Assembly: GCF_000143415.4 (NCBI RefSeq)
Contig: NW_003314261.1
Coordinates: 5,048,360-5,112,359 of the forward strand
Reading direction: 5' to 3'
Length of the DNA: 64,000 nt
From: Selaginella moellendorffii
Lineage: Eukaryota > Plantae > Lycopodiophyta
Of this stretch, positions 45,117 through 46,494 are shown in pieces (position 1 is the stretch's first letter; each line of letters starts with the position of its first letter). Under the pieces are notes generated by a model that did no database searches, was not told where the DNA came from, and saw only the letters and a program-made list of their open reading frames with translations. A program made the position numbers and the translations under genes.

Positions 45117-46494
45117 ATGCAGCGACGCCCAGTCAAGAGGTTGCGCTGCGTGTGTGGGAGCGATGGCGGGGAATACGATCTGGCCAAGGCAGTCAAGGCG
45201 CACGAGGCCATCGCCGCAATCGACAAGAGTAAGCTGTGCACTGCCGGTGAGATCACGGCGATTCCATATCCGGGAATCGGCAAGGCGCCGTCGATGCCCG
45301 GAGGAGATCTCCAGTTTGTAGGTCGCCGTGATCTTGAGAGCCTGGTGGAAGCAGCCAAAGAGACAAAAACGCTGCTAGTCGTTGGGCCGTGTGGAATCGG
45401 CAAGAGTTGCTTGCTCAGGGCTTTGGCTTGCGGGTGGATTCACGATGCCGCGGGGACTAACAGCAGGATTGTTTGCCTCTGGGACCTCGCGATTGCTATC
45501 GCTAAGCAGGACTTGGCCGGGTGCGTGAAGAACGCGCTGAGGTTCACGTTTTGCAAGGAGGCCGAGCTGTTGGATGAGATAGATCGCTTGGGTTCTATGC
45601 AAGACATCGCCAAGTTCTTCCGCGATCAAGTAGCAGCCGCGGGTGACGAGTTTTACTTTGTCGTCGATCAGTGGGAGATGCTTGACGCTCTTGGAGAGGA
45701 AATGCCAGTGCCAGTTCCCGCCAAGGAGCTGCGTAAGAAGTTCCACAGCGATTTGTTTGCTTTGTTCTCACTTGCAGCAGTGACTGTCTTGGGGCTGTCT
45801 CGTGGGGTTGGAATGACGCAGGAGTACTTGCAGCTGCGGTATAGTCCGTGCGAACTCTTGCTCCTGGAGGATGGTTTCTACGGGGTGAGCTGTTCTTTCT
45901 TGTGGATCTTTGTGTTTTGATTTCTAAAGTTTTGGTTGGCAGGAGGAGCTGACTGCTTTCCGAGACAAGCTGAGCGTTCTCGGGCTCCTTTGCTCGCGAT
46001 TCCCGAAGCGCTCAATGCTTGTGGAGCATTACACAGGGAGGCACCCGTTTTCGTTGGCCGTCTTGGACAGCAGCTGCCGGAGCTATGCACTCGGCAAGCT
46101 CGTGGCCCGCGAACTACCAAGTTCGTGGTTACACCGGCGTGGTCCGGAAAGGAAGCTTAGTCCGGAAGAGGTAGTAGCATGCCTGGAGGACGAGGAGGAC
46201 TGGCTGGCGGCGATTGAAACTTTCTTGTCATCGGGTGAGATGGCGCGGATCAGTTTCTCGCTTGAGTACGCTCTGGCGATGCGAAAGCCGCTGCGACGGG
46301 CATGCCAGACAATAGAGGACATGGCTAAGTTTGATTCGAGTTTCATTGTTGGTGACGAGGAGGAGGGGCCTGAGTTTGTGACTGAGCACATCGCCCTAGT
46401 GTATGCGGATGTGTTCCGAACAGCGGAGAAGGCCAATGTCTTCAGTGGTTCATGCCACACCGGATCCGGCATGGATTTCTCAACCTTGCATTAG
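45117..46494 (+). CDS. P-loop NTPase, STAND/Crinkler-associated NTPase-like, 2 exons
   Basis: FVGR motif, Walker A GPCGIGKS (45384-45407), Walker B FYFVVDQ, TGRHP (GxP) motif; intron 45885-45942 joins the two ORFs in frame (~440 aa). Confidence 0.75.

Follow-up and report, generated by a model that had tools for sequence, protein, structure and literature searches.

The window analysed here, a stretch of 64 kb (64,000 nucleotides) of the Selaginella moellendorffii genome, contains a two-exon gene for a stand-alone nucleoside triphosphatase (NTPase). We have found that this gene, which is genuine, is a nuclease-less variant and does not represent a new system. The explanation that we favour, and that we consider fairly likely as a whole, is that it is a truncated, NTPase-only member of a family of Crinkler-type NTPase-nuclease proteins seen in a lycophyte and a fern. 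The original prediction, made from the sequence of the window, had described a STAND-type NTPase with a fungal or Crinkler-looking signature and had proposed it as the best candidate in the window for an undescribed system. The last of these claims does not hold: the gene is annotated and belongs to a multi-copy family, and Crinkler-type proteins of land plants are already in the literature (PMC5289972, PMC12957317).

Translation of the window DNA places the gene on the forward strand, with the ATG at 45117 and the stop codon at 46492-46494. The exon translations correspond to residues 1-256 and 257-439 of the RefSeq protein XP_024535506.1 (P0003), with zero differences over 439 residues. RefSeq labels this protein 'uncharacterized protein LOC9632542', and the locus is placed on GL377565.1 near 5.09 Mb. 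This confirms the predicted open reading frame (ORF) of about 440 residues in two exons with an intron at 45885-45942. The older JGI models have 423-425 residues and either skip 15 residues (about 207-221) or differ at the end. The RefSeq model of 439 residues is preferable to them, because 45404-45824 is covered without a splice by a contig of the public run X1, and AlphaFold places a confident helix at residues ~207-221. The motifs read from the sequence (FVGR, Walker A GPCGIGKS, Walker B and TGRHP) are present where they had been placed and are conserved in the family. Walker A, D184 of Walker B and G288..P291 are invariant or nearly so across a family alignment of 20 sequences (A1). Therefore, these motifs are not due to chance.

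The model shows the product to be a whole nucleotide switch module of the STAND/ORC type, without anything further. The sole Pfam family above its cut-off was nSTAND1 (PF20703). It passed marginally, with 31.5 bits for exon 1 and 29.8 bits for the whole protein at a cut-off of 27.1, and the match is limited to profile positions 15-145 of 379. Weaker Pfam matches were nSTAND3, AAA_16 and NACHT. Scans against PADLOC and NCBIfam returned P-loop noise only. Searches of PDB sequence profiles with the alignments A1 and A2 gave matches to Walker A; the sole other match, weak and SAP-like, was to the tail of chloroplast bL28. Using AlphaFold2 with the family alignment, we obtained the structure prediction that had been proposed as a check. 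It turned out to be a confident three-domain NTPase model, with a mean predicted local distance difference test score (pLDDT) of 82 and a predicted template-modelling score (pTM) of 0.84. A disordered basic stretch (residues 1-19) is followed by a helix and a strand with PYPGIG (20-65), packed on the NTPase, and by a five-stranded P-loop core (66-250). In the C-terminal half, helices 256-313 form a lid in which G288-R-H-P291 is the opening, and a winged helix (~330-425) precedes a disordered tail of 14 residues.

We compared this model with the Foldseek PDB candidates by VIA-align. Among the prokaryotic proteins, PAB2304 (2qen) aligned at Z 15.3 over 285 residues spanning 59-412, SSO1545 (2fna) at Z 14.6 over 281 residues, and archaeal ORC2 at Z 14.5. 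The values were 15.1 for RPP1, 14.7 for WRR4A and 13-14 for NRC4, Sr35 and CED-4; TnsC and MuB gave Z 12-13.8 over ~265 residues (TnsC 13.8). The alignments with nucleotide-binding leucine-rich repeat (NLR) proteins, CED-4 and PAB2304 extend to residues ~412-430 at Z 13-15. The assignment to STAND-type NTPases is thus upheld, both by the nSTAND1 match above cut-off and by Z of about 15 to NB-ARC, CED-4, ORC and PAB2304 structures. Of the marks of a STAND protein, the P-loop core with Walker A and B is present, and the helical lid, GxP and winged helix are present at the level of fold only. A Pfam scan of exon 1 and of the whole protein found no NB-ARC at E<=10, no LRR and no TIR, in line with what had been claimed (no match at E<=1-10). 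Identity as an NB-ARC NLR was therefore rejected; the similarity is structural only. By Pfam, the protein also has no repeat sensor (LRR, WD40 or TPR) and no terminal effector domain, as predicted, and it ends 14 residues past the winged helix. The paralogues have a nuclease-like domain, and Pfam scans showed repeats in none of them.

To find relatives, we used an exhaustive HMMER (phmmer) search over 1.84 billion representative proteins at E<=1e-3. It returned 23 proteins, and 20 of the 22 beyond the query's own cluster were looked up. Further S. moellendorffii clusters account for 13 of these 20. Together with the query's own cluster this makes 14, which answers the proposed paralogue count with about 14 Selaginella sequence clusters. 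The clusters typically contain entries from two scaffolds, which are probably the two haplotypes. The fern Adiantum capillus-veneris contributes two other matches, of 690 and 680 residues. The remaining looked-up matches are weak: a protein of 6252 residues from Mugil cephalus and four metagenome proteins. The four metagenome proteins and two unresolved ones carry generic P-loop Pfam families only (IstB, AAA_16, NPHP3_N, nSTAND5) and no Crinkler header, and the weak non-plant matches were rejected as relatives. In the Mugil cephalus protein (P0018), six separate stretches match the P-loop region of the query (residues 78-134), and it appears to have many tandem NTPase modules. No seed-plant, fungal or oomycete protein was found in this search, and so the seed-plant orthologues expected of an ordinary plant NTPase did not appear. 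Judged by sequence similarity, the family is seen so far only in S. moellendorffii (about 14 clusters) and in the fern Adiantum. Word-index searches returned only the query's own clusters, whether exon 1, the family alignment or the C-terminal part of the full-length paralogue P0032 was used, and are uninformative on distant relatives. With exon 1, the single cluster returned is from S. moellendorffii and contains XP_024535506.1. A literature search on the locus tags and on Selaginella with STAND NTPase gave no match.

The top relatives are mostly 680-781 residues long (~700 is typical). They align over query residues ~20-425 and then continue for ~280 extra residues. This extra region has a conserved helix with W-x-E-x-G-W-x-C-E, then a strand preceded by an invariant (V/I)-D-(G/A), a further strand that carries L-H-x-x-A-L-Q-x-T, a helix with an invariant His and F-M, and W-x-L-H-F-x-F-x-C. 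It ends in a 45-residue motif of the SAP or helix-extension-helix kind (L..L..IA..G......K....LL.A). Pfam and PDB sequence searches on the C-terminal domain gave no match to a nuclease family. An AlphaFold model of the domain from Adiantum (pLDDT 77) has an alpha-beta-beta-beta-alpha-beta core, which is the restriction-endonuclease order. In the domain model, the invariant E lies on helix 27-45, strand 94-99 is preceded by the likewise invariant D93, and strand 105-112 carries Q111-x-T113. These positions match the E, D and ExK of the fold. Among the 50 best rows of a Foldseek search of the PDB, about 20 were restriction-fold nucleases (EcoO109I, EcoRI, McrC, BspD6I, DdmD, NucS, Cas4-like ACE1), an enrichment for the PD-(D/E)xK fold at weak E-values. 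An exhaustive VIA-align run on the domain was swamped by helical-bundle matches; the one long match was to N.BspD6I, in its catalytic domain (Z 6.5, 138 residues). In our reading, the extra region is a predicted restriction-fold domain whose active site is non-canonical.

The window gene does not have this domain. Its stop codon falls 14 codons past the winged helix, and the next gene begins after ~525 bp. Using tblastn with nine C-terminal domains, we found no remnant of the nuclease domain in the whole window (best E 0.17). The gene is almost certainly a truncated family member without the nuclease half. The loss of a C-terminal nuclease had been suggested from the sequence, and full-length paralogues and fern homologues indeed have a restriction-endonuclease-like domain where the window gene has none. 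The family tree is a star with an unresolved base. Six of its seven subfamily lineages, the fern one included, have or consist of full-length members, and by parsimony the truncation is therefore derived. An independent NTPase-only member, P0012 (430 residues), nests with the full-length P0014 with support of 96/91. Therefore, the nuclease half has been lost more than once. On the 1.7 Mb Selaginella scaffold of P0012, this 430-residue RefSeq protein shares a 90% cluster with an older 772-residue model (P0033) named 4-alpha-glucanotransferase, which is probably a fused gene model.

We also assessed the kinship of the family with Crinklers in the ESM-Atlas. For the protein's own Atlas model, the best structural match was a 725-residue Mucoromycota cluster, with a template-modelling score (TM) of 0.71 over 368 residues. 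The Crinkler header PF20147 is found in 88% of the members of this cluster. A 547-residue Mucoromycota cluster ranked second (TM 0.67), and bacterial STAND clusters reached 0.55-0.59. The separately modelled nuclease domain of Adiantum had as its best match the identical Crinkler-header cluster (TM 0.54, 191 residues, root-mean-square deviation 3.6). Next came the 547-residue Mucoromycota cluster, two unnamed bacterial clusters, and then clusters of PDDEXK_2, PDDEXK_4, Mrr_cat, PDDEXK_1 and McrBC. Two different domains lead to one target cluster, and therefore a generic P-loop resemblance is hard to invoke. For the full-length paralogue P0032, Mucoromycota clusters supply the three top feature matches (0.96-0.97) and all of the eukaryote rows shown. 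Of its 30 feature matches, 23 are without a common Pfam family; the matches include the Crinkler-header cluster (0.92) and a cluster with a helix-hairpin-helix (HhH) domain. By structure, the Crinkler-header cluster leads again. A Crinkler-type kinship of the family, as judged from predicted structures, is likely. The fungal-looking signature claimed for the gene is thus borne out at the level of fold and language-model features: one Mucoromycota cluster is the best Atlas structural neighbour for both the NTPase and the nuclease modules, but there is no fungal or oomycete sequence match at E<=1e-3 and no Crinkler header.

The literature agrees with such a layout. PMC5289972 names NTPase, helix-turn-helix and restriction endonuclease (REase) as the commonest Crinkler C-terminus, occurring in land plants too, and traces the NTPase-REase modules of Crinkler/RHS-type (CR) proteins back to NTPase-REase pairs that are linked to transposons in prokaryotes. 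Toxicity is presumed to lie in the REase, which the NTPase would regulate (PMC5289972, PMC12957317; citing Zhang et al. 2016). The Crinklers (CRNs) of Rhizophagus have REase, NTPase4 and HhH domains (PMC6131194). The role of Crinkler-type proteins in non-pathogenic hosts such as plants is called an open question in PMC12957317. The patchy distribution of our family and its Mucoromycota neighbours are suggestive of horizontal transfer. The typical short plant intron, the GC content of third codon positions (GC3, 0.66) and the zero fungal sequence similarity weigh against transfer.

The same searches bear on the strongest alternative, namely a generic STAND/nSTAND1-type NTPase of bacterial descent, with a Crinkler resemblance that comes from the shared fold and an NTPase-nuclease fusion that arose independently. 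We consider it unlikely. The only Pfam family above cut-off and the lack of fungal sequence matches agree with it. Archaeal and bacterial clusters of ATPase_2 or nSTAND1 make up most of the Atlas feature neighbours of the window protein (0.94-0.95), and bacterial nSTAND1 fusions align to P0032 at TM 0.43, similar to the Crinkler cluster. However, the nSTAND1 match is marginal and partial, and by structure the window protein is closer to the Crinkler cluster than to any bacterial STAND row. The nuclease domain, modelled separately, ranks the same two Mucoromycota clusters first, which the NTPase fold cannot explain, and the three top feature matches of P0032 are also from Mucoromycota.

The family member in the window appears to have been kept. 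The gene has four near-identical copies, of which three were examined as DNA and the fourth from its annotated protein (P0004) only. In none of the three DNA copies is the ORF interrupted before about residue 420. The copy on a second scaffold has the same stop, so that the ORF is intact there and not disrupted; in the paralogue ~74 kb away, an indel alters only the last ~19 residues. We concatenated the coding parts of the three natural copies and counted substitutions by the Nei-Gojobori method. The ratio of nonsynonymous to synonymous substitution (dN/dS) was 0.35, 0.20 and 0.26 for the three copy pairs. The coding DNA is 97.6-98% identical between copies, compared to 90-93% in the flanks of 500-800 bp, which have many indels. 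The low dN/dS and the more diverged flanks therefore indicate that the gene is under purifying selection. The junction proposed for checking was seen as well. Contigs of two public runs from different studies (X1 and X2) have the exact 58-nt GT..AG splice, and this spliced form is therefore evidence of RNA.

A different explanation for the short protein is a decaying 5' fragment of a full-length member, lying between housekeeping genes, transcribed at noise level and functionless. The C-terminal half of the family is absent, and indels make the last 15-20 codons differ from copy to copy. At codon 171 (45627-45629), the window copy has Gln in a nearly invariant column, where the other three near-identical copies and nearly all of the family have Arg. 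In two true RNA-seq runs, of which 12% of each was read, zero reads fell over most of the gene. Expression is therefore low or conditional. Nevertheless, we consider decay improbable, somewhat more so than the bacterial descent discussed above. The frame is open in three DNA copies and the fourth protein agrees, Walker A and B are intact, and the coding sequence, with its low dN/dS, is better conserved than the flanks and intron-like DNA. The intron is correctly spliced in contigs from two studies. The model is a complete three-domain module that ends at a domain boundary, and there is a second independent NTPase-only member.

The region also has an unusual transcript. A 1674-nt contig of run X2 (depth 81.7) joins 45190-45567, 46299-46355 and 46705-46900 in another order, with one piece inverted. 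The raw RNA reads of two 2026 runs back its odd joints, without depth over the remaining gene. There seems to be a rearranged, more highly expressed fragment copy elsewhere in the genome.

A divergent mitoribosomal mS29 (DAP3)-like GTP-binding protein is highly improbable and was rejected: mS29 gave the top VIA-align rows (Z 15.0-15.7 over 254-259 residues) and a Mucoromycota cluster auto-named S29 is among the feature matches of P0032, but there is no Pfam DAP3 (PF10236) match even at E<=1, the alignments reach only to residue ~301, short of the winged helix that NLR, CED-4, ORC and PAB2304 alignments include at equal Z (to ~412-430), and the family is multi-copy, lineage-restricted, fused to a nuclease-like domain and absent from seed plants, unlike a ribosomal protein.

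Besides the lost Arg and the empty RNA-seq runs, several points speak against a truncated Crinkler-type copy. The Crinkler link is a similarity of predicted structures and language-model features to automatically named clusters. Fungal and oomycete proteins are missing from the phmmer matches and thus there is no sequence-level link, and by Pfam the header PF20147 is found neither in the window protein nor in its copies or ten longer relatives. In the nuclease-like domain, the canonical active-site lysine is absent (QxT instead of ExK), and Foldseek against the PDB gave no significant row for this domain (E>=0.016). The derived state of the truncation rests on parsimony, with no resolved root. 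Gene conversion between copies could mimic constraint. The spliced contigs differ from the window by ~1.5-2%, so that a sister copy or another strain may be their source, and the RNA nature of these runs is a guess. Function is deduced from sequence and model.

In the explanation that we favour, the gene encodes an intracellular P-loop NTPase of the AAA+/STAND type. The full-length members would combine a P-loop NTPase, a winged helix, a REase-fold domain and a SAP-like DNA-binding tail, which is the layout of Crinkler/RHS toxin modules. The window locus would have kept the NTPase switch only and would later have been duplicated together with its neighbours. By analogy with structural relatives, the protein may bind NTP and then undergo cycling, conformational change or oligomerisation. 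In the full-length proteins, the NTPase may gate the nuclease, and the SAP-like tail may bind DNA. The Walker B motif is D-G-A-E/Q in the family and D-Q-W-E in the window gene, not DE or DD. Therefore, the sequence suggests slow NTP hydrolysis and a slow switch rather than a motor. The basic N-terminus, with RRPVKRLR, may contain a nuclear signal. The nuclease-less protein might serve in conflict or immunity, either as a regulatory partner or as a scaffold. Its co-assembly with full-length paralogues, as helper, decoy or inhibitor, is a tentative idea, less probable than not in our estimate.

The flanking genes encode an M28/PA peptidase, CRS1_YhbY, LOG and TAF2 and are ordinary plant genes. 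The peptidase-NTPase-LOG block is duplicated and inverted ~74 kb away (L002, GL377565.1:5157679-5179014, reversed), and the window itself contains no second NTPase copy. On a second scaffold (L003, GL377573.1:211053-232430), the matching order is PA/M28 peptidase, CRS1_YhbY, NTPase, LOG and TAF2, with an extra CRS1_YhbY/PA model. This scaffold is probably the other haplotype. Contamination is ruled out by the 6.95-Mb scaffold, the plant neighbours and the near-identical locus in the same order on the second scaffold. The NTPase start codon is preceded, at a distance of ~720 bp, by a tRNA-Gly(TCC) gene at 44325-44396 on the reverse strand. Downstream, at 46700-46830, there are two strings resembling a T-arm or box B, GGTTCGAATCC and GGTTCGAACCC, which have no tRNA or Rfam match and are unrepeated in the window. 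Farther away, a tRNA-Tyr(GTA) gene occupies 13542-13624 on the forward strand; its 83 nt are long enough for an intron. The stretches 1-4000, 16001-20000 and 62001-64000 of the window are very AT-rich, with a GC content of 0.23-0.34 compared to 0.45-0.59 elsewhere.

Table 1. Parts of the NTPase gene, in window coordinates
Feature	Position	Strand	Description
Exon 1	45117..45884	+	256 codons, residues 1-256; basic N-terminus, helix and PYPGIG (20-65), nucleotide-binding domain (66-250)
FVGR motif	45315..45326	+	Residues 67-70; first strand of the NTPase core (65-68 in the model); G69 nearly invariant in the family alignment
Walker A GPCGIGKS	45384..45407	+	Residues 90-97; G90, G93, G95, K96 and S97 nearly invariant; all P-loop family matches centre on this motif
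Walker B FYFVVD + QWE	45651..45677	+	Residues 179-187; strand 178-183 in the model; D184 invariant; +3 position E or Q across the family
Intron	45885..45942	+	58 nt, GTGAGC..TGGCAG (GT..AG); GC 0.38 compared to 0.57 in exons; skipped exactly by contigs of runs X1 and X2
Exon 2	45943..46494	+	183 codons and stop, residues 257-439; helical lid (to ~313), winged helix (~330-425), 14-residue tail
GRHP (GxP-like)	46036..46047	+	Residues 288-291; G288 and P291 nearly invariant; start of the long lid helix 291-313
Unconserved C-terminal tail and stop	46450..46494	+	pLDDT <50 for residues 425-439; full-length relatives run on here into the nuclease-like domain

Several known systems resemble the window protein. 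The likeness to TnsC and MuB is below that of the STAND and ATPase_2 matches, and the window has no transposase or TnsA/B-like neighbours. The ATPase_2 (PF01637) proteins PAB2304 and SSO1545 give the best full-length PDB alignments. This family dominates the feature neighbours of the window protein, and prokaryotic clusters that combine ATPase_2 with Hjc or Mrr_cat are among the neighbours of P0032. In contrast, the Pfam ATPase_2 model itself has no match to the window protein, the gene is eukaryotic and intron-bearing, and its family N-terminus and tail differ. With STAND proteins (nSTAND1, RPP1, WRR4A, NRC4, Sr35, CED-4/Apaf-1), the window protein shares the nucleotide-binding domain, the GxP-like lid and the winged helix (Z 13-15 over 280-300 residues). 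It differs from STAND and NLR proteins in the absence of NB-ARC motifs (RNBS, MHD), of an LRR/WD40/TPR sensor and of a TIR/CC/CARD effector, and its Walker B is D-x-x-E/Q, not DD or DE.

The closest comparison is with the Crinkler/RHS-type (CR, CRN) C-termini of Mucoromycota, chytrids and oomycetes. At the level of fold, the full-length relatives share with them the order of NTPase, winged helix, restriction-fold domain and HhH/SAP-like tail, for which the NTPase4, REase and HhH domains of the Rhizophagus CRNs offer a comparison. However, the plant family has a short family-specific N-terminus with PYPGIG instead of the ubiquitin-like (Ubl)/LxLFLAK header, the nuclease motif of the relatives is E..D..QxT without lysine, and there is no similarity detectable by phmmer. 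The window gene also differs in having neither nuclease nor tail; it is encoded by the plant among housekeeping genes and is not visibly a secreted effector. Most of what is known of Crinkler-type NTPase-nuclease modules concerns toxins of pathogenic and symbiotic oomycetes and fungi, and here a seed-free plant has kept a sizeable family (about 14 clusters) of such proteins. Since the Crinkler delivery header is absent, the plant presumably employs the family within its own cells. Selaginella probably has very few classical NLR genes. It is conceivable, although we regard it as improbable, that the expanded lycophyte and fern family of Crinkler-type NTPase-nucleases serves Selaginella as an intracellular system against invading nucleic acids or pathogens, with NTPase-only members, which arose at least twice, as helpers, decoys or inhibitors of the nuclease-bearing ones, and that the family entered early vascular plants from Mucoromycota symbionts or from a mobile element shared with them. 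Taken alone, the window gene is a modest result: it is annotated, although as uncharacterised, and its kind can be recognised. The family is more interesting than the locus. The pair of NTPase-only and NTPase-nuclease proteins is tractable for asking how the NTPase controls the nuclease. Retained nuclease-less derivatives under purifying selection parallel truncated NLRs and the regulatory STAND proteins that have no sensor or effector.

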